DNA of 63,854 nt, the filler included, from Choristocarpus tenellus KU-1152 (lineage: Eukaryota > Protista > Phaeophyceae): assembly GCA_964200185.2 (NCBI GenBank). It is 6 parts of 6 records of this genome, joined end to end, with 100 filler letters (N's around TTAATTAATTAA, not from the genome) between each part and the next. Parts side by side here need not be neighbours in the genome. Positions count along the whole stretch, not along the records: positions 27,450 to 38,984 come from CAXNAD020002272.1; 5 more parts are not named here. One strand, 5' to 3'. Positions 4,001 to 38,984 of the stretch are shown in pieces (position 1 is the first letter of the stretch; every line of letters begins with the position of its first letter). The notes below the pieces were generated by a model. It was given only the letters and a program-made list of their open reading frames with translations. It made no database searches and was not told the origin of the DNA. Both the position numbers and the translations under genes were made by a program.

Positions 4001-7000
4001 TTGACCCATATGCAGGGTTCCTGGACTAAGGGGAGAACAATTCCTGACTGGTTGGGGTTTGGGGTTCCAATGAAGGTAGAGGTTAATGGCTAAAGCTAAA
4101 GTCAACAGTCAACTGCACAGAAGGTAGTGACCTGGCTCGGACCTGCCAGATTTTGCTTCTGAGTAGCACAGACGAATTGTTGACAAGTGCAAGCCGAGAT
4201 TACATATTCCATTGCAACCAAGTCAAAATCTGTACATTATATGCTTCCTCCTTGGCCCTTGATGAAGCTGTTGTGAAAATCGATTGAAGTTGGAGGAGGG
4301 ATCAACAAAAATATGTTCCTAGATGGATTGAAAGCCAAAAAGAGTCTGAGGGAGGCTGCTACAGAGTCTGAGGGAGGCTGCTACAGAGCCAAAGGGTGCA
4401 ACCAGATATCGCAAGCTACCTTGAGGCAAGATAAGAGATCGACACAGGACATGATATGGTACTGGCAGAATTTGAAAGGGGGGATAGGCACTGCAGGGAG
4501 TAGCGATGTAGCTTAGGATGAAATCTGTCTGGGTGATCTCATGCACTTACGCACCTAATAGAATAGATTACAAAAAAATGTTCAACTATTTGAAAAACAT
4601 AAAATTGTATGATCTTGGCACATCTACTGTAACACTAAATTCAGGGCGCTTAAGAGCTGATATTGGGTCCAGCTCTTGCGTTGCTCCAGGAGATAAACTC
4701 TGGCATGATCATAAATGCTATGGAAATTAATGAATGAATTAATGGACCCTCTTCCCCACAAGTAACACAATGGCTTGAGGATATCTTTACTATCCTATTT
4801 ATTGAGAAATATACCTTAATACCATACTCCGGAGTATACAGTGCTACTGACCCAAAGCATTTAAGAGGGTAGGAGTTTTGCCCTGTTTGTTTCTTTGGGG
4901 CTTGACTTCCCACATGTGTTTTACACCCTTTTTCAGTTTTCTGTTTGAGCACAGATACCTATAATGTATACGACTATGAAAGGTGTGTCTGGAGCAAGGA
5001 TATTGACACTTGCTAACAAACACCATAGCCAAAATTAATCAAAATCACACCATTGAACGGACACGACCCTACCCTCTTAAATGCTTTAACTCACTCTAGG
5101 CTGCTTCCCCAGTCCACCTAGATGTATTGATACGAAGTTGGGTGGAACAAGCAAAAGGAACTATGGGAAAGGGATTCCCACCCCTGGGATTTAGTGCTGG
5201 ATGTTGAAGAATTGTTTTTACGCATCACAGGATGGGACTATCAATTTGTCCAATGCCATACCTTAACTTTCCCCCCCCTTTACCTCCTAACTGCTCTGCC
5301 CTGCCATTTGTTTCGCCAGGGAGAGATTTTTGATACCCTTATTGAGTCTAGCTTTAGGAGGTTACAGTTTGATCGACCCAGTAAGAAAGATCTTGCTAGA
5401 CCTACTACTTAGGTACAGCACTTGTAACCAAACAACACACTCCAGCGGTCCAAAGCACAACCTTTGGACCTTGAACAAGGCTGGGTGCCCGTGTAGTTTC
5501 TTGGTAGCCCCTAATAGTAATATGGCCATGAGAATGCTGTGCGTAACCCAATAGGACCAGGAAGTGAGTGAATCAACTTGAAGATTTGACAACCCTGTGA
5601 TATGGATGGGAGATGCCATCAATGAACCAATCGTAGAAGACAGTCAGGTAGGACTATTTCCCTTCTCCTAACCACCATCTCTCTGCATATGTACATGTAT
5701 GACCATAGACAGAATCTGGGACTAACCTGAGCACTGCTGGTCAAAGTTTCTGGGTACATGGACAAACTAACAAGCACCTCACAGACGGCGGTGATGCTAT
5801 CAGCTGAAAGGTCCATGCCAGTCACATCGCTTGAGACATGCTCAACCATTGTCGTGATGAGAGCCTGCATTGGGGTCAGACAACAAGAATTGAGAGGTTA
5901 GAGATCCTAAATTCTACGTCAATATCGCTTCTTGTGGGTTCCCAGTTGTTCACACTACAACAAATCAAAAGTAGTATTCCTCATATAAGGCTCTAGTAGA
6001 TAGCTGGACATCAGATTGTAACTTTGTGTGCACCTGCGTGTCTTGCATTTCCTCGCCCACATCATCCGTGCTTTCAAGATGGCTGAGTGCTAGAGTTAAG
6101 TATGCCCTAACACTCGCCACAGCATCTCCTGGCTGTACATTCTGGACAGATCCATTCAGCTGTCCTGATGCCTGCTCCAGTAGATATGATGGAAAGGTCT
6201 GCCGAAAGGCAATTGCACAGGCAGGCGATCTGGTGAGTTTGTTTATATTTCCCCCTGTACATTGTACGGAAGTGACAGAAGTGACAGTGGACAGGAAGAG
6301 CTGGAAATGCGATATTTTCGTAAGCTGGTGTAGGTCAAGGATGACATTTTGTACTGTCAGAAATGCAAGCAATGGCTTTTGTCCCAACCTCATAATTAAA
6401 CATGTTGCTATGAGTTCCATGGTGTGCGAGAAGAGCAGGCACCGTGCTTTGGGTCAAGACAGTGATCACTGCAGTTGGGAATACACTGATATTGGAATAT
6501 TTGCAAGGACAGTGTTCAGCATTAGTGGGAAATGGGCAACTGGTTGGCTGATACCTACTCTTTTTCAATGGCAGAAAAAAGTCCAGTTTAGTCACTTGCC
6601 AAGCTCAAAGTGTCTCCAGAATATAATATTTTCAGTCGATGACTTAGTACAGCATCAAAATGACAGGTAATTATTCATAGTGGGGAATGTGCTTTTTGTA
6701 ATCCAAGGTTTGTTTACAGAGGGTTCTGAATGTATGCTGTTCGCAAAGTACTTCATATCTGGTTTGATTTTTTCTCATCTCAGCAAGGCGCCATTGTTTT
6801 TTTGTGCAGATTACATCATTGGTTTGATCAGAGTACCCCAGACAATTGACACATTTCACACAGAGGCCCACGTCAACGTGCACTAGTCCCCAATGGAGTA
6901 TATGAGTGTACTCTGGTGAACTTACACAACAGAGTGTTACGTCGAGCGTCTACACTCCTAAGGCCTTGCAATCAGTAATGAAGCTCTGATAATATGTTTG

Positions 7001-10000
7001 TTATTCCCTCAGCTTCATCAACCTCACCTTGTTTGAGGCGAGAGGGTCATATGAGATGTTGGTGACTTGTACTGTAGCCACACCGCCATCCTTGTCAATA
7101 TATGAGGTTCCCTCTGCACCAAGGCTGTCCGATGCATGGCCTGAGGAATACATCAAGTTTTTGTGCAAGGCTATACAATCGTGTATTCTCTGAACTTACA
7201 TTGGCTGGCACATAGTCGTTCAATAGATTAAAGAAACCAATTAGTCACGATTATTCCCATTAACTTGGATATCCAGTAAGGATTGTAAACGCTGCCATGA
7301 TACTTTAAAAGGCGCTGTATTGTTTTCTTTTGGTAGCCTTGGGCCCCTTCTTAGCATAGTAGCATGAAATCAACAAGATATCTGGTTCTGTTTCTATATA
7401 TATATTGACCTCATCAGAGTGGAAAGTTGACTTTCTGAACGGTACTGCTGTGATAGGTCGAAGTTCCCTTTGACCCATAATGTCCTAGAGGGAATGTCAG
7501 GCATCCATTCGGGGCCTGTGGGAATCTGTAGTGATTTTCATGTCATCTGAGTGAGTTTGTCAAATGAAAGAACAATTTCCTTTGTCTGAACGCACCTTCC
7601 TTCCTCATCCCCCCGTTTCAACCAAATCCGAAGGAAATCACTTGCAAAACGGGCATCAATCTGGGGTATCTTACAACGCCCCATCAAACCCTGAATGGAC
7701 AACCTGGTCTAAACACCCCTTTCCTCTAAGATACTATAGGTCCGTAGACTAAAGTTGGGCAATTCAAGTACAGAGTAGAATCAGTAGGCATGCTTTGACA
7801 GACATTGTGCATGATATTAGTGGGATGATACTGGACATACACCTAGCCCAAAAAAACTCTGACCAGCTTTCTCCAGGAGAAGTGGCATGCAAACATATAG
7901 AGAGTATCATGTAAACAATTGTTGGGATTGTTGGATAGCTCTTGCTTGGGACTTGCCAATCAAGGTGATGGTGAAGTTGTTGGCCGATTCTCCCATAGGT
8001 AAAGGACCAGACCACTCCACTGACTCACTCTTTGATAGGGACAGACTGAGATAATCTCCGCTTCCATCCTGTTTGTCCAGTAACTCATTTCAGAGGTCGG
8101 GAGTGGTAATTGAGTGTGGTGCAGAGTGTACTATACCTTTGTCTAGACACCTTTGACGAATGTAGCTGGGGTGTGGAAACCAAAAGAAAATGTGTCAAGT
8201 GGATGAGCAATGCATTAAATTTGCTCCTCCAAAAACAGACGTAGATGCCTAGGCCTCTCCATACCAATTGGAGCACAACATCATTCATTAAGTTGAAAAC
8301 ACACGCAAAGTAGCAAGCAAACCTCAGTAAGTGTGTATACATATGGACAACAACATATGATTACCACAACACAACATGCATTGTTCTTGTCCAGTGCAAA
8401 AAAACGCACCTTCAGGTTTCTCGCAGGCTGCTCTCTCACCTTGCTATGTGCATAGGAGAAACTAAGAAGGATTGGTAGGTCGTCCTCATCATCTGTCCAG
8501 GATAAGTTCTCCAGAAAGAATGTGTCTAGTGCCGCCTCACCTTTCAGAGGGCTAGCACCGATGAATCCTCCATGTGGTGCTGAGTTCACCAAGATTGAGA
8601 CTTCACTAAATCCTGTGGTTGAGAGGAGAGTTAACCACGAAATTGTAAGCCTCTTAACTGTAGGCAGTGGACCATTTTAGCGGGGTTCATCTACTGGTAT
8701 GCCTCTTGGAAAAAAAAATAATGGGAAGCACAACCTATGTTCTTGGTGAAAGGATCTTGAGCCGAGAGCCTAAAGGTGTAGCTTCCCCCACTTGAGAGTT
8801 TGTTTGGACGGATGATGAGGTTTATCCTGCAGGGTGTGGAAAATAATTTTCAGCAAATAATGGTTTGTCATGGCTCATGGAATTGGATGTGAGGTATCAA
8901 AATTAGGCGAGGACATGCCAAAAAAGAATAAAGTGTCAGGTAGTCAAAGTGTTCAATGAGTATCATTTTGAAGTGTGTTCATGTGCGTGCCAGTTCTTGA
9001 GCATCAACTTGCCCAATTTGAGAGGCCAACAGATCGGATAATAGCAATAAGGCAAACTTGACTTTCTTCTTTGTGACACTAGCAATCACTGTTGTACTAG
9101 TAATGCGTGTCTGTAGCTTCGTCCAAAATAGAACTCCAACAGCAAGTGCTGAGTGAAAGTATCTTAGAGGCTACGAGTTTTGCCCTGTTTGTCCATTTGG
9201 GACTTTGCTTCCCATGGGTTCTTTTATGACATTTTCCTACTCCAAAATGTTCAGGAGTAGTTACAGTGTATAAGTTATGAAAAGGTGTGTCCGTGACAAG
9301 GATATTGGCACTTACTGACAAACACGATAGCCAAAATTACATCAAAATCTAAACATTGGGTTTTGGCCCCCAAATGGACGCGGCCCTAACCTCTAAGATA
9401 CGTTGGTTCACTGCCATCATCTTTGAGTCAAGCCAAGTGAGAGGTAAGCTGGGTTGCATTGTAAGGATCCCCCAAAAGGTAATATGTATGTCATTTAGTA
9501 CAATTGCAGAAGCAACCTTCTCCTGAATTGTGGTATCCCTTTGTATGTGGAAAGGGGGAATAACAACGTTGCATACCATATTGTGTACACGGAGCAATGA
9601 AATACATTGTATTGCTCGGGGAAAGAAAGATGGCTTAGAATTCAAAAGAGTCTAAGCCTGACCACCTCTCACTTGGTTTGACTCTTTCCTCTTCAGTGTT
9701 GAGATGGTTTTGGTCAGAGTTTGTTGCAACATGCTATTTCGTTCATTAAACCACCACGGTGTGCCTTACCCGTGCATGGAAGTGGAGAACACATCCTCCC
9801 AGAGTGAAATGTCTAAGTCACCTTCCTCCTGCCGTTTTGGAAGGTATATGTTATTGTCAATATAACAATAAAACGTAAGTCTCGTGTTGCAGCACCTAGG
9901 GAAAAGGATATCTATAGCAACACACAGTGCTATCTTCCTATTCACTGTGATCACATTCATTTAATGTGGAACCAATTTCCAATCATCAAACACACACTCA

Positions 10001-13000
10001 CAACAACCCACCACCACACCAACATGGCACTGTAATTTGACTCCAGGTTATGCTTGCAAAATCGCTGGATGCTGAACATGGATTGGAGAGATACACAGGA
10101 TAGACTGTATGTGTAAAACGTTTTGCCTGCTTGGGGTATGTCAAATAGGATTCTAACAAACTCGATCCTATACTGACTACATGCACAAACTTGTACCTGG
10201 GTCCAAGTTATGTTGTTCGTTGAATTGGTGGTGCCATATATCACCAGTTTGGAGGTGGGATCGTGTCTGGTTTTGTCATTTTTGAGGGCCACGGCCACCT
10301 CAGGATAGGAGTAGGAGACAACCTGCCGTGAAAGACTTTTGTTGTTTGTTGCAAGCACTGGGTTGCAGAGAACTGACTGTCTTGTGACAGAGCAAAATAT
10401 GTGGCATTCTTCACTCTCATCCAACTCACTAGAATATTTCTTGACTAGAGTGAGAGCCACAAACGGAATACGGTGGTCGGTTCTTGACCTACAAAGCTTG
10501 TAGCATGATCTGCCATGCGCCTTGTTTCTTTCTAATCCCTACCTTGACTTTGCACATAGTGGAGTCTGTACGCAGCAGGCGGTATGTCTCATTAGCATCA
10601 CGGCTTCCCTTCGTCACGTTGAGGACAAAGGTGTATATCTGATCGATCAGGAGTTGAAAAATAGTATTAGCGACTGAGGTTTCAGGAGTGCAAGATATGT
10701 TGTTTTGCCCATCATTGACAAAATTAGTTGGTATAGTGGGTCGATCAGATTTTCTACTTCCTGAACTACAGTTTCTTATGCTCTATTTTATTCAACTACT
10801 GTGGAATGGCCTCCTCCACCTGATCATATCAATTACCTAGCCATCGGTACTTTTTCCTACTGGACACCTGAAACCTTTGGGAGGACAAAAAATGTTGAAG
10901 GTACTCTGGAAAATACAATCCCGAGTTCAAGAATAACAACAGGGTGTTGAAGAAATGACAAGGAATATTACCAAAGTTGAGCATAATTGTTTGGGGCAAA
11001 TACCAGTGGAATTTCACCTCTCTTTAATCCCTATGTGATTTGGGAAGCTTCACCAAGACGTTGAAAAACCACAACCTTTCGAAAAATCGGTTCAACACAA
11101 AGAACATCTCACATTCCGACTTCTTTTAACTCTTTAAAATACTAATTGAAGGGGAGATTTTCAAACCTGAAAAACCTAGTATGTTGACAAAAATGTCTGT
11201 TTTGTCCAAAATCACTTCGGGTAAGACGGTTATCAATATAGAGAGATTCTGCAATATTAACCAATACCACAAATCATTTACATTCTAAATACACAATACA
11301 TAGATATATAGATTCATAGATACATAGATATATAGATTCATAGATACATAGATACATAGATTCATACATACATACATACATACATACATACATACATACA
11401 TACATACATACATACATACATACATACATACATACATACATACATACATACATACATAAAAACTACTACATATTGACGTATATATATACATATTACACAT
11501 ATTTGATCTGTTCAGTATATATTATGTATATGAAGTAGTTGTAATCCAACGTTTGTCTAACGTGTGACATACGTATATCGAGCCAGCTAGACAGATACCC
11601 TCCCCCGAATTTTGCCTCTAGGGGTAGAAGAGGCGCTCTCCAATGGCTACCCAGTGGAGGAATGAAGGAGGCAAAGGGGGAACACTGGTCATGCTCGCAC
11701 ATGCCCCCAAGCTATTGGTCAAGTACAGCAGCACTCACTCATAGTCCAGCAAGTAGGCAACATGTGCTGGCAAATGGTTACCCCCTGCACCTTGGAGAAC
11801 AGCAGTCCCTTAACTGTCAACCGCAATTTCCGTATGGATGCGATCTTCCATGCAGGAACTCCCTCCAATACAACCTACTGCCCTATACAGTGAAAAGAGA
11901 CTACTCCTGGATGTGACCTTTGCTAAATTACAAGTGGACTGCCAACTCCTCAGCTCGTCAAACAGCAATGGCATTGCTCCTGTTGCAGCAAAGGCATGTA
12001 AAGTGTATCCACTACAAGGGATCCTTTCACCCTCTTAGTCTTAACCTCAACCAACACCTTTGTTGTAGAAACCTTCCAGCATTTTGACACACAGGTCGAG
12101 CTTTTCTGCACAAGCTAGAGACTCTTATTGTAGGAGGGAGTAGGGAACGGGTGGGGGTTTCAGCAGAAAGGGAGCTATAAAACCACATTGAAGACAGATT
12201 ACAGCTCAACTGGCCATCTCCAGAAGAGTTTTGTGTTATAATTAGAGACTCCCCTTTCCATTTCTTGTTTTGCCTACATGATAATCCCTGCAACTTATCA
12301 GCGAATATAATGATATGCATACTCTGGAGTATATTAATTATCAATGTTCTTGAAGACACAGAGTTTTGATGAAGAGTTTTGGTTTCAGATGTCAGAGTTT
12401 TTGTTTCAGATGCCATGTTTTAGTACCTAAACCTCTTGAGGCCATCCAAAACAAGCGACCAAAATCTTGTGGAAGAAGCTATGATAATATTAGAGTTGGA
12501 AGAGTAACTCAGACTCAACTTGTACTTGAGAAGAAATTCAACATCACTACCTTAAATATATTAGAAAGAAGTTGTCTGTAGATCGCCATGTTGAATGCTA
12601 CCTCCTCTGTTCGGAATTAAATGTAACGTGATTTTTGCAGCCCTCATGAACAAGTAAGATGTTTTTCCACATGTGCAATTTTTTTATGGGTGTATTGCAC
12701 AGACACCAAAAGTTTGCCCACCAAAATCTCAAGCAAAATGGGCAGCCTACACCCACCTATGATCCTACCCCCGAAGCCCTCCAAAACTCTGTTCCAGGAT
12801 GGTATGTTGCTGTATCCACCATCAGGGAGCTTGCCCACCTTCTCGGCCTTTTCCTTGCTAAGATGGGGAATTTTGAAGGACCCAAAGCATCTAAGAGGGT
12901 AGGGTCTCGTCCGTTCGGGATCATACATCCAATGATGCGATTTTGATTAATATTGACTATCGTGTTTGTTAGCAAGTGTCAATATCCTTGCTTCGAGCAC

Positions 13001-27449: not shown

Positions 27450-27612
27450 CAACCCATAGGGAGCAGTGCGACTAACTCCCTGTGCCCCCCCCCCCCCCCT
27501 CAATTTTAGCGAGCAGTGCAGATTACCCACACTTTTCATCCCTCTAATTAACTAACCATGACCCTATCACATGATCTCTCCCTTAACCATTCTGTTGCCT
27601 GTGTGTTCCAAG

Positions 27613-28254
27613 CTCCTCTGGGCAACCAGTGTCTGGTTTCATGGAAAGGTTTCATTCGTCAGAGAGTATTTTGATGCGATACGAAAGACGAAGTTTCCAT
27701 CCTCCCACGACAAGGAGGAGGGTGTGCCCCAGAGTCGGTCCCTTGTAGCACCAGTGCGTACCCTTTCTACCAGGAGCTCACAGTCTATTCCGATAAACCA
27801 AATCAATTCCGAAATGGAACAAAGAAACAGCTTCCGAATTCCAGAGCGACTTGGAAGCACCTGGCGTGCCAGGCCTTCAAGCTCCCGGCGCACTGGAAGT
27901 GATGATTTCTTGCTTCGCAGTCTTAGTAAAGGTGATGTTTACAGTGGGTCTGACAAAGTTATTTGATATATCAACCATTATCGTTTACCCTGGAGGTTTG
28001 TTTTCTAAACATTCCATGCGCACACCTTTTCATTCATATGCGTGTGTGTGTGTATGTGTGTGTACCTGAATACATACAGCTCTATGCATGCCATCCCAAT
28101 TGACATTTTTACCTCTTTGGCAGGTGGGTCTGGTGTAAATGAACTGCAGACACCGATGAAGTCTAGTCTGCATGTGAAGGAGTCGTATGCTCCTGAAAAG
28201 AAGAAGGTTGATCCTCAATACCCACATTCAGCACTACGTGGGCAGGCAAAATAA
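27613..28254 (+). CDS. Last two exons of an unidentified gene (27613-27931, 28124-28254)
   Basis: Open exon LLWATSVWFHGKVSFVREYFDAIRK...LRSLSK, then G|GTGATG donor, ttggcag| acceptor in matching phase 1, ending ...ALRGQAK TAA; no recognisable family. Confidence 0.55.
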
Positions 28255-30024
28255 GGACATTTTCTTGTGTCTCACATGGAGAAAAATATATTGTGGGCAT
28301 GTGTCTAATGACTGAGAATGCTGGGATGGAAATAAAAAATGGCAGTGGGGAAAACTTTGTGTATTTGTTTACACAGATCATGATCGGCACATAAATGAAG
28401 GTGGACTGGAAGATTGCAATCCAGTCTATGAACTTGATGGGAATGACCTAACTGGTATTATTGTCAGTATTATTAGTAGTACGCATATGAAGTTTTGCCC
28501 ATTCTTAGCCCCTTGTGGTTAACGGGAACAGTGTCAGTGATGTAGATGTATCTATTTAGGAAGCCATGCCTGGCATACTGTCAGGTAGTGTGGAATGATG
28601 CAGACAGCTCAAAGGAATGCAATATGCATCCCAAGTCTCAGGGGCAGGTGCCCCTCCCATGCCATTCCGGCAAGAACACACACACACATACACACACACA
28701 TACAGAGAGAGAGAGAGAGTAACATAGTGAAGAAGTAAAATATTTTCACGTGGAGTAATGCTATATTGTACCATCTTTGAACGCAAAAAAGCAGCCACAA
28801 TGAACTACATCGGCATGAGTTACACAGCTAGTGAACATTCTTCAATTTGGAAGGTGTGTCCACTAGGTCGGAGAGTCACAACTCCCTATCTTTCTGCTGT
28901 TGGTTTCAAAGTCATCAATCCATCGCTAATCTGATGCTTTATAATACAATGTGTCAGTAGTGCTTGTCCATAACATACCTGTTCTGTATCAGGCAGGCTA
29001 AATTCATTCTCGTTGAAAAAGGGTGGTGGTCCCTACTCCTTCCAACTCAAAGGTCGACTGTTCTCTCTACTGTGATATCTGTCTAGCGTATTTTACTCCA
29101 GAGTGCTTCGAAGAATTAAGTAATCAGGTGGAGTTAAATTGATCGATTTTCCATGCTGGTATCAAACTTGTGATTTAACGCATCATGCACCAATGACCCT
29201 CAACCAGAATTCCTAGACACATAGTATATCATACCATCACAGAAACACTTTGTCTGAGAGTGGGTATATCGAAGGCTACTTCTATGCATCAAAGTCATTC
29301 ACAGCCATCCTCACTTAGGAGAGAGAGATCAATTTTGAAGATCCTTGAGAATTTAAGTTCCTTTTTGAATCTCCTGTCAGGCACCCAATTTCCCATGCCT
29401 GACATGTAGCAAATTTACATTAGGAGGTAGTGATTGTAGAAGAGGAGAACATTTGTCCACATAATGAGTGCGAAATAGCCCTCAGAGTGTTGGAAGCATA
29501 TGGACTGGAAGGAGGTTACGGGGTCCCAAATACTCAAACACACACACCCTTAGGATATGGTGGCTTTCATGACTGCTGTTGTGAATCAGGGATATAGCAG
29601 TAGTAGCATGACTTAGATTATAGTCAGGTACTGCTTTCTTTCTTTTGGCACCTTTTCATAAGTCCTGAGTAGGACCACACAACTCCAAGTGCCCCTGGTC
29701 AACTGTCGAGACCACCTACGTAATACAACTTCAAGTATACACTTTAAACTCGGAAGGCATTCCTCCTACACTACACAAAAAACTATATTCTACTTACTAG
29801 CTATTATATTGGTATAGTATGGGGTGGTGGTTGTTTATGGTATAGCAGTACATAGAATATATCCAGCAGCTCAAGGTTATTATTTTAGCACATTGATTTT
29901 TTAGGTTATACTTTCAAGTATGAAACAGTTTCTGCTTGTTTGTATGCCATTTGTCCTGGAGTAGCTATTGTAAACAGTACTGTCTTTACATGGTTACTAT
30001 AATATTGTAATAGCTTTCCTTTCT

Positions 30025-30284
30025 GAGTCAAGGTAAACAAGAAGTACCAGGGTTGCATTTTAAGAATGCTGACAAATGTGTGCAGATCTCGTTTTTTTAC
30101 AAGTGCTTAAACGAACTTTTCTGAATGATGTGTCGAAAAATTTCAAATAATAGAGAGAGATCAACAGTATCAAGTTAAAATTAGCAAGTCATCCATAGAA
30201 ATATGGGTGAATTGCAAAATATTGAAAAACAGGTTTTTAATGAAAAATGGTCAAAACCTGGGTACCTCTCATTTTCTTTGGCTC
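30025..30284. mobile_element. MITE family C, TSD TCT
   Basis: gagtcaaggtaaacaag...ttctttggctc flanked by tct/tct. Confidence 0.88.
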
Positions 30285-33200
30285 TCTATGAATAAAGAAG
30301 AGGTTATGAATGGTATGAGAAAGAAATGGACTTAATACACATTTAACTGGGGTAATAATGAGCACTGCCAACCCTACAAAAAAAAAATGTAGTTGAGTAG
30401 TAGTGAGTCGAGTTGATTCAACCCAATCCGATCAAAGGTATCCAGCATATCAGAAAGCCATCCAACAATACATCACTCACTCGAATTCTGTGGTAGTTGT
30501 GTTTATTACCCCGAATGAATTGGACTCATTGTCCTAAGTGCTGTTTCAGAGGCCTGACCTTGATACCATTTTTTGTTGGACTTCTGTTAGGGTCCATGCA
30601 TGACGTCATAGCACTGGATTTAGTTCCGTTATTGAGAGGTACGCTGACAGTACAGGGTTGAGAACGGGCAATACCTTAGTCACACCCAGGGCACTAGGCT
30701 CAAGTCTAGAAACAGGTCACACGGGTCTACTGATATATTATGGCAGCATAAGCCCTCCACCTTCACACTCTAAAATAGCATTCTACAGTCAGGAAAAAAC
30801 GCGGAAGGACAAAGTGAGACCCAAAACAGATAGTCACTTATCACACACCAATAATTGTCAAGATCGTATAGATAGCAGAGTCCTCGAATATATATATTTT
30901 TTTAACTGTGAAGCCAAGGGTCGATCCGAAATATTTCGACATGTATCACCTCAAAATATAACACATACACAGATCTTAAAACAGAGCGGATGGTCCCCCA
31001 GCAGCATCAAGATCCAAATGCAATACTAGGATTTTACAGTGTCGCAGTGAAACAAGTTCTTGGTTCGCAAGAGGATGTCTGAACCTACACAACACAAGAA
31101 CTCAGGTCCAAGGGGGTACAAATCAAGTCAACAACCATTCGGCCATGCTCTCGCCCACAGAAGGAGGATCTGCCCTTGTCAGTGGCTCCAAACCATCACA
31201 CAGCTGGGTCATGGTCCAGCGTGTTGTTGGATTAGGGTCCAGACTTCCACAGAGGATTTCCCTCATCTGGATCTACACGTTTGGGCCGCCGGGAGCTATG
31301 CTGACTACTAGGTAGAAGGATGTTGACCACAGCAGGGTGAACACCAACACAACACTCCTCAGTAGTGCGCTGCTGATTAAATCTACAATACTGAGTCAAG
31401 AAAATTGAGAGATGGTTTTGAACTCTTTGCATTCTAAGTCATCTTTCTTAACCTGTGCATTTTACTCTATTTCATTGCCTAATTTCCATAATAGTGTACA
31501 CAACATTGATCATTCCCCTTTCTGCGCACAAGGTGACACCAAATTTCACCAAAGATTCCTTCTCCAAGAGTATAAAGAGGTTATTATTGCCCTATCTCAG
31601 AATCCTTAAAATGAAATCCTACCTACCCCTCGATTTGATTCACAGCCAAGTTGTAGCTCAGACACAAGAAAAAAAAAAAAGATAGGATGCTGTCCTATAT
31701 CTTTTCAAAGCTATTGCTACCAGTCACAATGATGTGAAAAATCCCCTCAAACTCTGCACCCTGCAAAGTTTTAAATAGACGTAATTGCCCAATGTACACT
31801 GCACTACACTTACATTTCATTCTTAAACCAACAAAACCACACCCCAAATTCATACCCCTTCCCCTCCACCACTGCCATTGCATACTACCTCATAGGTTCT
31901 GCCCTCCAGTTCCAAGGAGCTGACCTCCAGCAACTCCTCAATTGCAACAGTCTGTTGGCATTACAGCAAACATTCAACATTGTATCACCAGTCACATCAA
32001 CATTAGAAATATATGACACAGTATTATTGTACATAATCCAAATGGCCCTTGCAAAGTGTGCCTGTTGTTGAAGTATTCCTCACTGGACCCGTGGCTTTGG
32101 TGCTTTGATGAAGGACAATGAATAGCTTGATGTAGATATGCAATGTTAATATTACAAGGGGCTTGTGGTCTCAATTCCGTTGACAGAATAGGTGGGTGAG
32201 ACAAGCCTAGACTATCGTTACTATTCCTATAGTGTGGGGTTTGCAATCGTCGACACTATTTTACTATGAATCACTCATTTACTTGTCTTAAGTATGGTAA
32301 GTGTATCTTGAACATAAACACAGAAATCAATGGACACTAGTGAGTCAATATAGTTTATGGTATAACTATCGCTGGCTCTCCATCCTATTATCTAATCCAC
32401 CGGTGGTGTCTATAGTGTATCACTAGAACTATCTACGAACACCTGTGGCGTATGTACTGTAGGCAATGGGAAATCAATAGCCAAAGGGTCCATACACCCC
32501 ACCATTGCTCCGTACAGTCTACTACACCTCCAAAAGTGGTTCAAGCTACATTGCTACTGCATGCAAATGCACTAATCAAATCCAGTTACTTAATTGTTGA
32601 AAAATAGTGGAATAACCCTCTCAAGGAAGACCACAACAAGCAGCAGCCATGAAAGAAAGTTCGCCATACATCAATACGTGTCTTGAGGTGGGCTTATCAG
32701 GATTTCTAACCCTAAGTGAGAAACAAATACAAGTGAAGGCTTGCTATTAAGACTAGAAATTTCAGGAACATGCTCCATCAAAACTGACTATTGGTATTAC
32801 TAGATTTCAACTCACAGTGCAGTCACTCTTAATGTGTCAGAAAGCAGGTATGCTCCACAGAAACGTATAATCACATTTAGGTCACAATTTGCATTGCTGC
32901 AGCAAGATCACATTGAGAGGGGGTGCCCACAAGACACATCATGTATGCTGAGACTGCAAGGAATGCCAAGTTTCATTGATTTCATAGAGAGTGAACGGGT
33001 GGTACAGAGATTTTTTTTGTTGCTGCTGAGGATGAGATTTTCTGTCTACATTGAACCCCACAAGCTACAGTACTCCAGTGATCCTAAATGCTGCGATGAT
33101 CAAACATCATACAAGCAGTTTCTATTTTCCAGGTGAATATTGAGTTCAGACCAGGGTGGCATGTTTTTCCCTATATGCTTTTCGACTAAGCAAAATATGA

Positions 33201-33754
33201 CTTGTTTCATATGGTTTGTGAAGAGTTTGTTCAATGTGTGAGGTGAGGTGAAGCAGAAGTAGAGACAAGTGTGGCTCTAAATTGTAGGGCCCACTGCACA
33301 CTGTGGAGGTATCATGTGCCCACTCTACACACTACATCCTACCCCCGGTTTAACAAAACAGGTATGTGCTCATGGGCAACTGGAGGAGGTCACATTTCTC
33401 CAATGGTGATAGTTAGATGCCTCAGTACTGTTGAAGTTGTGATGATTACAACTCTTTGGTCATCCTTTTGGACACTGCAATATATAGGTCATGAAGTAGC
33501 TGTTGATTCAAGAACACGGTCTTGGAGGTTTTGTTCTACCTGTGGCCTCCACTCCACACCTGTTCTACAACGAGAGTGAGACTAATGTTGCATGCCCACC
33601 CCTGAAAACCGCATTCTGGATCATTGAATTGTCTTTGAAAAATGTGTCCTACTAGTGGCAGTGGCAGTGGTTATCCCTAGCTGAAGTCCAAACGGCCTGT
33701 TCGTAACTAGAGCCGGTCAGGGGGATTGTTGTCATCATGTCAACCTTCACTTCT

Positions 33755-34274
33755 GAGTGAAAGTATCTTAGAGGGTACGAATTTTTTCCTGTTTGTCCAT
33801 GTGGGGATTGGCTTCCCATGGTTTTTTATTGACATTTTATCTACTCCAAAATGTTTCGGAGTAGGTAAAATCTATACATTATGAAATAGTGAAAGTATCT
33901 TAGAGGGTAGAGCCGCGTCCATTTAGGGGACAAATCCAATGTTGCAATTTTGATGTAGTTTTGGTTATCATATATTTTAGGAGATGTCAATATCCTTGTT
34001 GCAGACTCACCTTTTCGTAACGTATGCATTCTACCTACTCTGAAACATTTTGGAGTAGGTAAAATGCCATTAAAAACCCGTGGGAAACCAGGCCCCAAAT
34101 GGACAAACAGGGCAAAACTCGTACCCTCTAAGATACTTTCACTCAATAGGAGTGTCCAGACAAGGATATTGACATCTCCTAACAAACATGACAGTCAAAA
34201 TTACATCAAAATTGCAACATTGGATTTTGGCCCCCAAATGGACGCGGCTCTACCCTCTAAGATACTTTTGGCTT
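33755..34274. mobile_element. MITE A (TSD TCT) containing a second, inverted MITE A at 33888-34144 (TSD AAT)
   Basis: Host halves 33755-33887 and 34148-34274 rejoin into the family A consensus; the inner copy is complete and reversed. Confidence 0.9.
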
Positions 34275-34871
34275 TCTTCAAGTGGCACGGTTCCCACTCA
34301 AGTGCATTTGGTGAAGCTCCTGGCTTCTAGCGGCAAAGAAGCAGGTTATCCTGTTTTTCTCCGGGTGGTAGTAAGACAAAGCTCCTTCAACAAGAGGTTT
34401 GTTGGCAAGTTTGGAGATCGACATAATTATCTACAGCCACCTGAAGATAGTAGGTATGGTAAATATTGAGGCTGAGCTCGGGCTATCCCTTGATCAACCA
34501 ATCTTTACTTGTATGTGGCCGACTGTGACTGATTCCTCTTCTCCATTGAGGGCAATGGGCTGAGAAATTTTGGAATAGGGAAGCAGACTGCTTCAAACTC
34601 CAACACCTCATACCCAAACATCTTGTGTCCGGCAAGCACAGCTCTTATGATTGAGGTCAAACTCCATTGAAGCTGCACCTTAGTTACAACCCTGTGACTT
34701 TATCACACCATAGAATAATCTTGGTCCTATCAAGACAAAAGTGATTCCTTGTTTGCAAGGCAATAACCCTGATCCCTTATTCCACATGTGGCTCTCCGTC
34801 CATGTGATTGGTCCTACTGGTGCTGCTGAAATTTGTTGCAGTTTGCCTCCTCATGTCAATGTGGTACAGCT

Positions 34872-35054
34872 GGCCAAACATATCTGAGAGGGGGTGGCGG
34901 CTGTCCATTTGGGGTCAATTTTTTCATGTCGCGATTTTTGGGTGGTTTGGGTTGCATATGTCTGAAGGATATAATGTAAATGCACGTTTCCTGATTTAGG
35001 GCCAAATGGACACCCTAGTGTAGACCCCCCCCCCTCCCCGAGATAACTTTAGTC
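34872..35054. mobile_element. MITE family B, TSD AGCT
   Basis: Family B internal sequence flanked by agct/agct. Confidence 0.88.
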
Positions 35055-35505
35055 AGCTACATGCCGATGGTCTTGGAGGCGTGGGATGGGAATGTTAGGG
35101 AGTACCTCACTGAGAGGTACACCCAGTATGCTCTCAATCAGGACTTGATTTACCATCTGTACAAATGTTTGTAAGGTGAAAAATCTCTAGAAATATTTGT
35201 ATATGCTGAAATGGGATAGTCCACCATGACGAAAAGACTGCAAATTTGATCATTTCTAACGCAAGACTATTCCCCCAATCGAGGTTGGTGTTCCTCTCTG
35301 TCTCCTAAAGATGTACTCTCGCAGATGCCGTTGCAAATGATCAAATTTGCGGGTTTTACATCATGTTGGACTATCCCACTTCAGCTTGTACAAATACTAT
35401 TAGGGAATTGACATTTCACCTCGGAATTTTGTACAGATGTCATGTCAAGTACTGATTAAGAGCATACTGGGTAAACCCGCCTACAAGACCATTGACAGTT
35501 TGCTG
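35055..35505 (+). ncRNA. Long imperfect fold-back 1, candidate miRNA/hairpin-RNA precursor
   Basis: Colinear complementary blocks: atggtctt/aagaccat, cccagtatgctct/agagcatactggg, catctgtacaaa/tttgtacagatg, gctgaaatgggatagtcca/tggactatcccacttcagc, gcaaatttgatcattt/aaatgatcaaatttgc. The inverted repeat is certain; RNA function and strand are inferred. Confidence 0.55.
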
Positions 35506-35850
35506 GGGAAGATTGGTTAGGTTTGCTTTGCTTTTTGGAGTACGATGGACGGACGACTCGAATCCCACACTCCCACTCTAACTCCCTTAGATTGACTTGT
35601 ACTACCTTGAACGGGTCTGCTACACATGTATAGTACAAAGGGATGTTGATTGTGTTGAAATTTGGTTGGTGGAGTTTGGACTGGTGTTAGGGTCATGGTA
35701 GCTAGCAGTATATATTGATTGATTTGTGACATGTACTACATTCAAAAATATTCATGCTGCTTGGTTTCAAGTTCTCAGGGTTGCAATGATGCTACAATCT
35801 GGATGAGTACAGTGGGTTGATCTGGGGGCAGTGTGGACAAATAATTAATC

Positions 35851-36380
35851 CTTTCCCTAAACCTTATTTGCATTACCATGAGTGTGAGGTTCAGAACTAA
35901 GGTTGGATGAACTAGCCACTTCAATCCTCAAACGGTAACTGAGTGGATGGAGGCCCAGACACATCTTCATATGTCAAACCCGCAGATGGGAGATGTAGAG
36001 ACCGTTTGGGCAACATCTGACGCATTACCACCAGTTGATGTGTACAGCATGGACATTTACCTTTTGGGAGGTGCTTGCTGGGAAATACTTCGACAATCAA
36101 CACTGCTGCTGAGCTCAGCTTCCTTTGCTCACAATATCTTGATTGTCAACAGGTTTCCAACAAGCACCTCCAGAAATCACATGCCATGCTGTACACATCC
36201 ACAGGTGGAAATGCAGCAGACTTTGCCCATAGAGTCTCCACATCACCCATCTGTGGATCTCGTGCAGGGACACGTCCCTGCCTCCATCCACCCAGTCACC
36301 TCAGGAGGCATAAAGAGGCTAGTACATCCTACCTCCGACTTGTACCCCGCATCTGGTATTGCAAACAAGGGCAGAGGAAT
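35851..36380 (-). ncRNA. Long imperfect fold-back 2A (~250-bp arms), candidate small-RNA precursor
   Basis: tttgcattacca/tggtattgcaaa, gtggatggaggc/gcctccatccac, gatgtgtacagcatgg/ccatgctgtacacatc, ggaggtgcttg/caagcacctcc, gacaatcaa/ttgattgtc around a short loop. Confidence 0.55.
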
Positions 36381-36391
36381 GCATTCGAACA

Positions 36392-36847
36392 TCCTGAGGT
36401 GACTGAGTAGATGGAGGCTCAGGGACGTGTTCTTGCACAATATCCACAGATGGGTGATGTGGAGACCGTTTGGGCAACATCTGACGCATTACCACCTGTT
36501 GATATGTAAAGCATGGACATTTACCTTTTGGGAGGTTCTTGCTGGAAAATACTTCGACAATCAACACTGCTGCTGAGCTCAGCTTCCTTTGCTCACAATA
36601 TCTTGATTGTCAACAGGTTTCCAGCAAGCACCTCCAGAAATCACATGCCATGCTGTACACATCCACGGGTGGAAATGCAGCAGACTTTGCCCATAGAGTC
36701 TCCACATCACCCATCTGTGGATTTCGTGCAGGGACACGTCCCTGTGCCTCCATCCACCCAGTCACCTCAGGAGGCATAAAGAGGCTAGTACATTCTACCT
36801 CCGACTTGTACCCCGCATCTGGTAATGCAAACAAGGGCAGAGGAAAG
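36392..36847 (-). ncRNA. Long imperfect fold-back 2B, tandem duplicate of 2A with a shortened left arm
   Basis: ~36430-36847 is a near-identical direct repeat of ~35970-36380; stem runs from tcctgaggtgactg (36392) to cagtcacctcagga (36772). Confidence 0.55.
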
Positions 36848-37091
36848 CATTTGTGTAACGCTATATTTATCCTCAGACTAATCTTCCACCAAACATTGCA
36901 CTGATCGAGATTGCAGCAAAATGTCAGCTCTTAGAACCCGGAATAACCAGCACATTCCTATATGAATGCAGTACACATCATGGACCAATTAATATTTTCT
37001 ACGTATGTACGTAGCAGTATATATTAGCATGTCCCTAACAATAGCACAAATGTTACTAAATGTAATTCAAGAGATGATGATGCTTTGAATA

Positions 37092-37268
37092 TCTCAAAGT
37101 GTCTTGGAGGGGTTGGCGGCTGTCCATTTGGGGTCAATTTTTGTATGTCGCGAGTTTGGGGTTATTTGGTTGCATACGTCAGATAGATACTGTAAAAGTA
37201 CTTTTCCTGATTTTGGACGAAATGGACACCCTGGTGTAGACCGCCCCCCCGCCCAGATACTTTGGGTC
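37092..37268. mobile_element. MITE family B
   Basis: tctcaaagtgtcttgg...ccagatactttgggtc; flanks aata/tata. Confidence 0.88.
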
Positions 37269-38716
37269 TATAACTAACATCCTTTATTACTACAAGTACA
37301 AGCAGTTGAAATGTATATAGCAGATCCATTCATGGTGGAAGTCAGCTTAAGGAGGTGGAATTTAGGTCATCCATGTATTTAATCTAAAAAGTACATTGAA
37401 ATAGACTGTTGCACGCATCTTAACATGCCTCCAATGAAGTCCAAGATCTTGAAGGTAAGGGAAGCTGCCAATAGTAGTGCAGAAATACCGATTAAACAAA
37501 TATAATATTTCAGCACATACAAGTAGGGAAATTGTGTTTTTCAGGTAAAGAACGTGTTCAAATGGCAAGTAAAGTCCTGGTGGAGAGCGTACTTGGGTTA
37601 CCTCTTACTGGTTACTCTTTAACAGTACAATCTCCTGCCTCCAGAATGATTGGAAACCCCAACTCTCACCTTTAAAGACCAGAAACTAGACGAAATCGAC
37701 ATGGGGATGAACCGCACCAAGTTTCATTAGCACTAGTACAACCAAACAAATGGATGGAGGCATGGGGAAAGAGGGAAGAGGATGGGCCCAGACAAGGACT
37801 GCTTATTGACACAATAATAGTCACTGCCTTGCCTGCGTGATCAAGTCACAGCATTGCTGCTCAAGTGCGAATTTGCTCCGATTGGAGTTCCACCCGAGTT
37901 CTTCTCAACATCTCCGCTTCCAAGATGCAAGATGTTTGGGTCCTAGAGGTCAAAATTTGACATAGTTTGATTCCCTACAGCAAAATTTCTGTCCATTCCC
38001 TTCGCCTGGGAACAAGTGGCCATACCCAAGCATGATCCTTGATTTTGGTTGAAGTTCAATTCAGTATTGGTAGATCAAGAGGTAGCCTGAGCCCAGTTTC
38101 AATATTTGCCATACCTACCATCTTCAAAAGTGCATGTACATGTTAATTATATCAATATCAAGACTGCCCAATCAACCACTGGGTGAAGCAATTTGGCCTT
38201 GCTACCATATGGAGAACCCTAGGATAACCTCCTTGTTTGCCGCTAAAGGCAAGGAGCATCACAAAGTACACTGGGTTGGGAACTGTGCCACATGAAGAAG
38301 TGAATGTTGACATAGAGCAAATATATCTAATCAGCAGTCACTCGTTGTTGGCAGGTAGATAATCTTCTCCTTAAGTCTCTCATGTACCTCTGCACTCATG
38401 ATGTCACCTACTGCTATGGAAACATGGCACAGCCTTCGTCCACATGAAAATGTTGGCAGGTACTTGTTTTTGGTGGTTAAGCAGGTGAACTTAACAATTG
38501 TCTCGGAAAATGGAGAAAAGACAGGGAGTACCTTGCAGATAGGTACACCTGAACTGCTCATGACAAGGAACACACTTGTTTCCTTACAACATCGTCTCGG
38601 CCGCACCATTGCTGTGGCAGAGCAATGCGGTCTCATGCATGCTCATGAAAATTGATATGTCAAAGAACATATGGCAAAGATGGCAAGTGCTGTACTGGTG
38701 CTGGATGACCAGAGTT

Positions 38717-38984
38717 GAGTCAAAGTAAACAAGAGGTGCCCAAATTTTGTCCGCTTTGCATGTTTAGCCACATAGTACATATTTTGCAACTCACCCATAT
38801 TTCTATGGATGAAGTGCTAGGATTGACCTGAGAGCGTTGCTTTCTCTATTGCTAAAAAAAAATGAACAGAATTCAAGAGAATTCCTATAGGCATTTGTAC
38901 ACAAAGTCGAATTCTGTACATTTGACAGCATCCTTAAAATGAAACCCTGGATACCTCCTGTAGACTCAAAGTATCTGGGGGGGG
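38717..38984. mobile_element. MITE family C interrupted at 38963 by the start of a family B element
   Basis: gagtcaaagtaaacaagagg...ctggatacctcctgta|gactcaaagtatctgggg. Confidence 0.85.

Follow-up and report, generated by a model that had tools for sequence, protein, structure and literature searches.

We describe a cluster of three long, imperfect fold-backs in the genome of Choristocarpus tenellus KU-1152, an early-diverging brown alga. All arms of these fold-backs are almost certainly decayed exons of a single Ser/Thr kinase gene, an intact paralog of which, coding for the protein CAM9246362.1, is present in the same genome. The cluster was found in a window of 63,854 nucleotides (filler included) joined from six parts of assembly GCA_964200185.2, within the piece that comes from record CAXNAD020002272.1 (positions 27450-38984; all coordinates refer to the whole window unless assigned to the paralog). 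Judged from sequence, the feature is real and its origin is explained by rearrangement of kinase paralogs. We propose, with a probability of about 0.5, that it presents a hairpin-RNA (hpRNA or proto-miRNA) locus, built from the host's own kinase exons and working as a source of kinase-directed small RNAs.

Hairpin 1 occupies approximately positions 35054-35505, hairpin 2 positions 35847-36385 and hairpin 3 positions 36392-36851, which confirms the three long fold-backs of the original prediction. Folded as RNA, they reach minimum free energies of -210, -236 and -263 kcal/mol, respectively, with z-scores of -15.6, -15.6 and -16.5 against shuffled sequences, and none of 100 shuffles was equally stable. 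All three stems are stable imperfect fold-backs, as is characteristic of inverted-duplication hairpin loci, with MFEI of about -1.0 to -1.2. The arms align over 151, 254 and 173 columns with 81%, 73% and 83% identity. Because only 7, 7 and 3 of these columns contain gaps, the mismatches are mostly of equal length and the arms stay in register, just as had been predicted. The short loops expected by the same prediction are found in hairpins 2 and 3 (about 25 nt); hairpin 1 possesses a loop of about 55 nt and, besides, a 34-nt side branch. Hairpins 2 and 3 are tandem duplicates with a period of 464 bp, 93% identical overall and 98% between right arms, a relationship that had been overlooked.

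Table 1. Features of the hairpin locus and its surroundings (window coordinates; paralog coordinates refer to contig L001)
Feature	Position	Strand	Remarks
L001 kinase 3' end counterpart	30988-32863	-	from alignment with L001
Last kinase exon (copy C)	31123-31266	-	6/144 nt differ from paralog; acceptor and stop intact
Penultimate kinase exon (copy C)	31889-31951	-	3/63 nt differ from paralog; AG/GT intact
Kinase pseudogene copy A	32941-36096	+	paralog 7823-10038; introns 81-90% to paralog; broken up by MITEs
Nested high-copy MITEs	33755-34268		inserted in copy A intron
High-copy MITE	34882-35050		inserted in copy A exon V, at base of hairpin 1
Hairpin 1 left arm (L1)	35054-35262	+	3' part of subdomain V exon fused to part of catalytic-loop exon (VIb) through genomic deletion (paralog 8872-9350)
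Hairpin 1 loop	35263-35317		mostly non-homologous filler
Hairpin 1 right arm (R1)	35318-35505	-	inverted L1 copy with same deletion; 81% to L1
Spacer between hairpins 1 and 2	35498-35846	+	kinase intron, ~88% to paralog 9437-9790
Hairpin 2 left arm (L2)	35847-36100	+	intron end and subdomains VIII-IX kinase exon; stop and frameshift
Tandem duplication, 464 bp	35934-36851	+	units 35934-36385 and 36398-36851, 93%; one hairpin made into two
Hairpin 2 right arm (R2)	36111-36385	-	subdomains VIII-IX exon in opposite orientation; frameshifted
Hairpin 3 left arm (L3)	36392-36564	+	mosaic of R-like and L2-like sequence
Hairpin 3 right arm (R3)	36575-36851	-	98% to R2; contains the 106-codon open stretch that revealed the kinase
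Kinase pseudogene copy B, older	36575-38313	-	inverted relative to A, ~72% to A; introns 68-76% to paralog; three stops in exon V
High-copy MITE	37093-37270		within copy B

Kinase motifs were recognised by eye in the six-frame translation of the locus. An open stretch of 106 codons (36613-36930, minus strand) was put near kinase clusters by a protein-feature search and matched one real protein among 1.84 billion representatives, namely CAM9246362.1 of C. tenellus (605 aa, Pkinase domain), with 60% identity and E-value 7e-16. TBLASTN of this protein against the piece 27450-38984 located subdomains V and VIb on both arms of hairpin 1 and subdomains VIII-IX on all four arms of hairpins 2 and 3. 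Homology to a protein-coding gene, represented by exons V, VIb and VIII-IX of the kinase on contig L001, is therefore present on both arms of each stem and extends beyond any single target site. The original prediction saw no credible exon here and took the stems for two unrelated sequence types; in fact the arms are recognisable, though broken, exons, and both types are neighbouring exons of one kinase gene. Contig L001 is collinear with the window over exons and introns and carries the same MITE families as the window piece. In the runs holding the window locus, 20 of 20 checked paralog variants equal L001 bases; these runs therefore hold L001 as well, and the two loci belong to the same genome.

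Other searches were less productive. Pfam models gave no kinase match on 20 stop-free window pieces, which are too short and too decayed, and three matches obtained in a search of window pieces (P0001, P0003 and P0004) were discarded as repeat-driven chance. Word-indexed search for homologs of the 106-aa piece yielded none, and the same search with the kinase domain of the paralog returned only the domain itself, so that relatives from other algae were not available for comparison. Similarity to PDB entries is that of kinases in general, the best being TTK/Mps1 at 1e-9, and we claim no orthology.

The fold-backs form the middle of a far larger inverted pair of gene copies, which had also escaped attention. 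Self-comparison identified 34274-34706 as inverted homolog of 37837-38299 and 35074-35163 as inverted homolog of 37555-37643. With MITEs removed, the left side (copy A, plus strand) and the right side (copy B, minus strand) align collinearly at about 72%, and the hairpins are therefore the centre of this older pair. Copies A and B are dead, being disrupted by stops and frameshifts, by a MITE within exon V and by the loss of half of exon VIb; neither retains an intact reading frame across subdomains V-IX. The two terminal exons of copy C differ from the paralog in 9 of 207 bases, while their flanks are only about 80% identical (p 7e-8). These exons may belong to a third kinase copy that is still working or was so until recently. 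Upstream exons of copy C would be located beyond the edge of the piece, and the hairpins would then lie in its intron. Scrambled kinase remnants occur at 38434-38707 (plus strand), where a piece resembling exon V precedes a piece of an N-lobe exon, in wrong order and on the strand opposite to copy B. Several open stretches with possible splice sites and no Pfam match at 27560-28256 (plus strand) may represent the 3' terminus of an adjacent gene.

Comparison of the arms with the paralog indicates how the hairpins arose. Deletion of paralog bases 8872-9350 is common to both arms of hairpin 1 and absent from copy B; R1 was therefore copied from L1 within the already broken copy A. Copies A and B meet in hairpin 2, at the VIII-IX exon. 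In the intron preceding this exon, copy A is closer to the paralog (12 private changes in A versus 41 in B), whereas in the exon itself the order flips in favour of copy B (34 versus 17). Arm L3 is composite: its first 60 nt are nearer to the R arms (15 of 19 informative sites) and the remainder is nearer to L2 (22 of 24). Exchange between inverted arms would be the simplest reading of both the A/B switch and the L3 mosaic. The kinase gene went through several duplications, and two of its dead copies, A and B, lie inverted, meeting at the VIII-IX exon; within copy A, the V-VIb exons were doubled by a local fold-back, giving rise to hairpin 1, and the 464-bp tandem duplication later turned the central hairpin into hairpins 2 and 3. 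Gene conversion of L1 by the paralog is unsupported, L1 retaining the ancestral base at 5 paralog-only sites. A deamination-type (methylation) signature was not seen in arm comparisons, where transitions are no more frequent than transversions.

Contigs of three public runs (X1, X2 and X3), the only ones that hold the locus, were aligned to positions 33000-38984. None of the runs is recorded as RNA, and we infer from its contigs that X2 is. Over the paralog intron 9437-9824, X2 contains a contig of 446 nt, identical at every base with the unitig expected for this intron when the spliced form is present too; as predicted, it runs from base 9407 to base 9852 and has base 9740 at record position 113. 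The corresponding stretch of X1 belongs to an unbroken 2416-nt contig. X2 thus behaves as RNA, since the intron-bounded unitig matches exactly what is predicted for a mixture of spliced and unspliced transcripts. Its depth over the paralog is 117 in exon and 16 in intron, and there is good support for the intact paralog being spliced and expressed in X2. The same unitig test could serve for typing other unlabelled runs of the study.

Over the hairpin locus, X2 provides near-identical, unbroken contigs with depths of 24.5, 27.2, 14.9, 16.4 and 7.3. Its unbroken cover extends over 35008-36221 and exceeds the DNA background; thin cover at 36200-36599 is seen in the DNA runs also. In the lowest bins, MITE sums of X2 are 0.07-0.16 times those of X1, so that DNA carry-over is at most about 2-3; this bound is indirect and has the spread of the X3/X1 MITE ratios (0.18-0.35 versus the expected 0.32). 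As the X2 cover of 7-27 lies above this background, the locus is probably transcribed, in unspliced form and at an intron-like level, as far as contig depth, a poor measure of expression, can indicate. The RNA would possibly be an intron or upstream part of a minus-strand kinase paralog with well-kept last two exons.

Potential targeting of the paralog was evaluated with 21-mers in good duplex context, scored by plant-type rules against its coding exons (joined and checked against the deposited protein). Scores of 2 or lower were reached by 5 21-mers from the minus strand of hairpin 1, by 13 from the plus and 1 from the minus strand of hairpin 2, and by 28 from the plus and 26 from the minus strand of hairpin 3. 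One 21-mer matches the paralog perfectly, and 5'-U candidates are among the scoring ones. An expressed transcript of the parent family with near-perfect complementarity (scores 0-2) to the stems therefore exists in the form of the paralog mRNA spliced in X2. This complementarity is automatic, since the arms are homologous to the paralog, and is no proof of use. The original prediction did not notice that the arms, being kinase exons, have an expressed paralog as obvious candidate target. Pairing of at least 15 nt, as demanded by Tarver 2015, occurs in many windows (16-19 of 19) and is not discriminating. Rfam returned only sub-threshold plant MIR models, the best with 58.6 bits versus a gathering threshold of 245; failure to match a described miRNA family is expected for lineage-specific loci.

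The stems show only weak and inconsistent signs of selection. Private changes in exon V of hairpin 1 number 1 in the left arm and 15 in the right arm (p 0.0005; 7 versus 18 in a three-way count, p 0.04), and L1 is better conserved than the intron of its own copy A (1/97 versus 12/156, p 0.02). The left arm is antisense on the minus strand, and its low change count suggests a putative guide arm. In the exon of hairpins 2 and 3, changes shared by the arms are enriched (19/212 versus 5/156, p 0.03). G:U strand bias is not significant in the three stems (p 1.0, 0.07 and 0.77), the match-run test of the stems revealed no surplus of long paired blocks, and the arms of hairpin 2 (73%) are no more similar than flanks in unpaired context (72%). 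The better-conserved arm is antisense on the minus strand in hairpin 1 and on the plus strand in hairpins 2 and 3, so a single transcript cannot explain the arm pattern. The codon-position test on 14 listed variants, a partial list, was uninformative.

Several explanations of the locus have to be weighed. The fold-backs are neither chance, transposon nor assembly error; a fold-back transposon or MITE, or an assembly artefact, is extremely improbable and largely refuted. Although the inverted arms are long and genuine MITEs nearby fold equally well, summed depth of the hairpins is about 20, 15 and 6, i.e. single-copy level plus one paralog, compared with 1e4 to 1e6 in MITE bins, and the arms map onto kinase exons. 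Neither a GAGTCAAAGTA-like end (within 2 mismatches) nor a TSD was detected at the hairpin ends, in line with the original prediction. Hairpin 3 is covered in pieces only, no single contig spanning it whole, but hairpin 1 is spanned by contigs of three runs with 0-1 differences, one contig (35947-36413) crosses most of hairpin 2 together with the duplication junction, and arms divergent by 17-27% are unlike chimeric reads. Both findings that the original prediction named as fatal to itself, dispersed transposon copies and the absence of the inverted structure from independent data, thereby fail to apply. The prediction of one or few precise miRNA/miRNA* duplexes per stem, a true miRNA cluster, is quite unlikely. 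The stems are imperfect and in register, their MFEI is suitable, and in 5 of 6 hairpin/strand cases they contain 5'-U 21-mers with at least 14/19 paired positions and good target scores; fold-backs of 450-540 nt, however, far exceed the 170 nt that is the mean in Ectocarpus, clustering is rare among miRNAs of Ectocarpus and Saccharina and none was traced to a protein-coding gene (PMC4513859, PMC5381526), no 21-nt window is clearly the best, and the Rfam matches are driven by shape.

Neutral wreckage, left by fold-back and tandem rearrangements of a dying kinase cluster and giving no small RNAs of consequence, is a serious possibility, albeit short of an even chance. The hairpins would then exist in DNA and passing intronic RNA, and the arm asymmetry would be due to error-prone template switching and inverted-arm exchange. 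MITE insertions, stops and frameshifts throughout, the further scrambled kinase pieces, hairpin 2 arms just as similar as their flanks, the missing structural-selection signal and the A-to-B switch of the paralog-closer side, as a recombinational arm swap would give, all agree with it. It is opposed by RNA cover above background, by the conservation of L1 in an already dead copy, by the retention of three stems within 1.8 kb and by the fact that transcribed stems of 170-250 bp are likely Dicer substrates. In the hairpin-RNA locus that we prefer, Dicer would cut the imperfect stems into mixed 21-nt RNAs, some of which would enter Argonaute and dampen the paralog mRNA, by a mode that is probably translational repression in Ectocarpus. 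The chance that small RNAs are made from the stems is slightly better than even, and a selected regulatory role of the hairpins is doubtful. Compared with a set of discrete miRNAs, a hairpin-siRNA or proto-miRNA locus with heterogeneous products is the likelier interpretation. By its make-up, the locus is built like an inverted-duplication hairpin locus, which fits the originally predicted small-RNA-capable character, and is not to be filed as miRNA. Rather unlikely is its more elaborate version, a polycistronic hairpin locus in an intron of a working kinase paralog, with AGO-loaded 21-nt RNAs directed against two exon blocks of its own family. If true, it would be the first gene-derived (inverted-duplication) birth of miRNAs or siRNAs caught in brown algae, in their earliest-diverging order and with a single defined target.

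This kind of locus is known from plants. Young Arabidopsis MIRNA and inverted-repeat loci, such as MIR161, MIR163 and MIR846, arose by inverted duplication of target genes, according to Allen 2004 as cited in Fahlgren 2007 (PMC1790633). The products of loci formed in this way vary between precise miRNAs and mixed siRNAs, and such loci often become irrelevant as they drift (PMC1790633). In A. halleri, miR217 is another inverted-duplication case, and the route was found to be rare (bioRxiv 10.1101/2024.07.25.605110). The hairpins described here share with young Arabidopsis loci fold-back arms with extended gene-family similarity, drift mismatches in the stem and the parent family as predicted target; MIR846 likewise joins related duplicated sequences. 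Contrary to the Arabidopsis loci, they are known from sequence alone, they comprise three stems that represent two exon blocks of a single gene, one of the stems is formed between two old paralogous copies, and brown algae are an independent miRNA lineage. Drosophila hpRNAs and mouse oocyte pseudogene endo-siRNAs likewise come from long, imperfect hairpins, which consist of duplicated gene fragments and act on the parent gene. These employ animal pathways (Dcr-2/AGO2 and oocyte Dicer, respectively), and their likeness to our locus may be taken as resemblance only.

Within stramenopiles, Phytophthora produces 21-nt RNAs, from heterogeneous to precise, at inverted repeats and gene/pseudogene clusters (PMC3804510). 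Our locus is likewise a stramenopile combination of inverted repeats with a gene/pseudogene cluster; in the oomycete, however, small RNAs were sequenced, whereas here the source is a two-to-few-member kinase family read from sequence. Fold-backs of Ectocarpus miRNAs have a mean of 170 nt (PMC4513859), and miRNAs of Ectocarpus and Saccharina are mostly intronic, seldom clustered and reported not to derive from protein-coding genes (PMC4513859, PMC5381526). Small RNAs of brown algae (Ectocarpus) are 21 nt long with 5'-U, and their one AGO seemingly acts on translation (PMC12867755, PMC12477816). The hairpins of C. tenellus belong to the same algal class and are long and probably intronic; unlike the shorter, rarely clustered algal miRNAs, they occur as a cluster and clearly stem from a gene. 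The miRNAs of brown algae evolved independently, and two surveys list no miRNA from a duplicated protein-coding gene, one of them noting that no miRNA target was confirmed (PMC4513859, PMC5381526). The present locus bears on both points, as it unites a gene-derived triple hairpin, a parent gene that is expressed and lies in the same genome, and near-perfect sites by prediction. As far as our literature searches reached, it is the first brown-algal candidate of its kind. Small RNAs from the stems, if detected, would mean that miRNAs are born in the plant manner in stramenopile algae, too, and the hairpins together with their parent gene would make it possible to examine whether an algal AGO slices a perfectly matched target or represses it; otherwise, the locus is an ordinary rearranged pseudogene.

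Some properties of the paralog and of the MITEs deserve mention in their own right. In the intact kinase (L001 4649-11542), HRD is replaced by HHD and DFG by DLG (non-RD type), and the searched databases contain no close relative of it; its N-terminus contains a helical stretch and spaced Trp-Arg motifs with no Pfam match. A degenerate fold-back, 66% identical over 458 nt, is situated just upstream of this gene (L001 3933-4376). In both DNA runs, depth over the paralog (L001 8546-10961) is roughly double that of the window locus (31.7 versus 14-21 and 14.2 versus 4-7.5), as would result from two nearly identical copies of the paralog or from hemizygosity of the window locus. Termini of GAGTCAAAGTA-like type are common to several MITE families, whose summed depth rises to about 50,000x single copy; besides the sites in Table 1, such MITEs occupy 30025-30284 and 38717-38984 in the window and 1-165, 6853-7015 and 13426-13688 on L001. 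Their GAG...CTC ends are reminiscent of Sola2 elements, to which we presume a resemblance.
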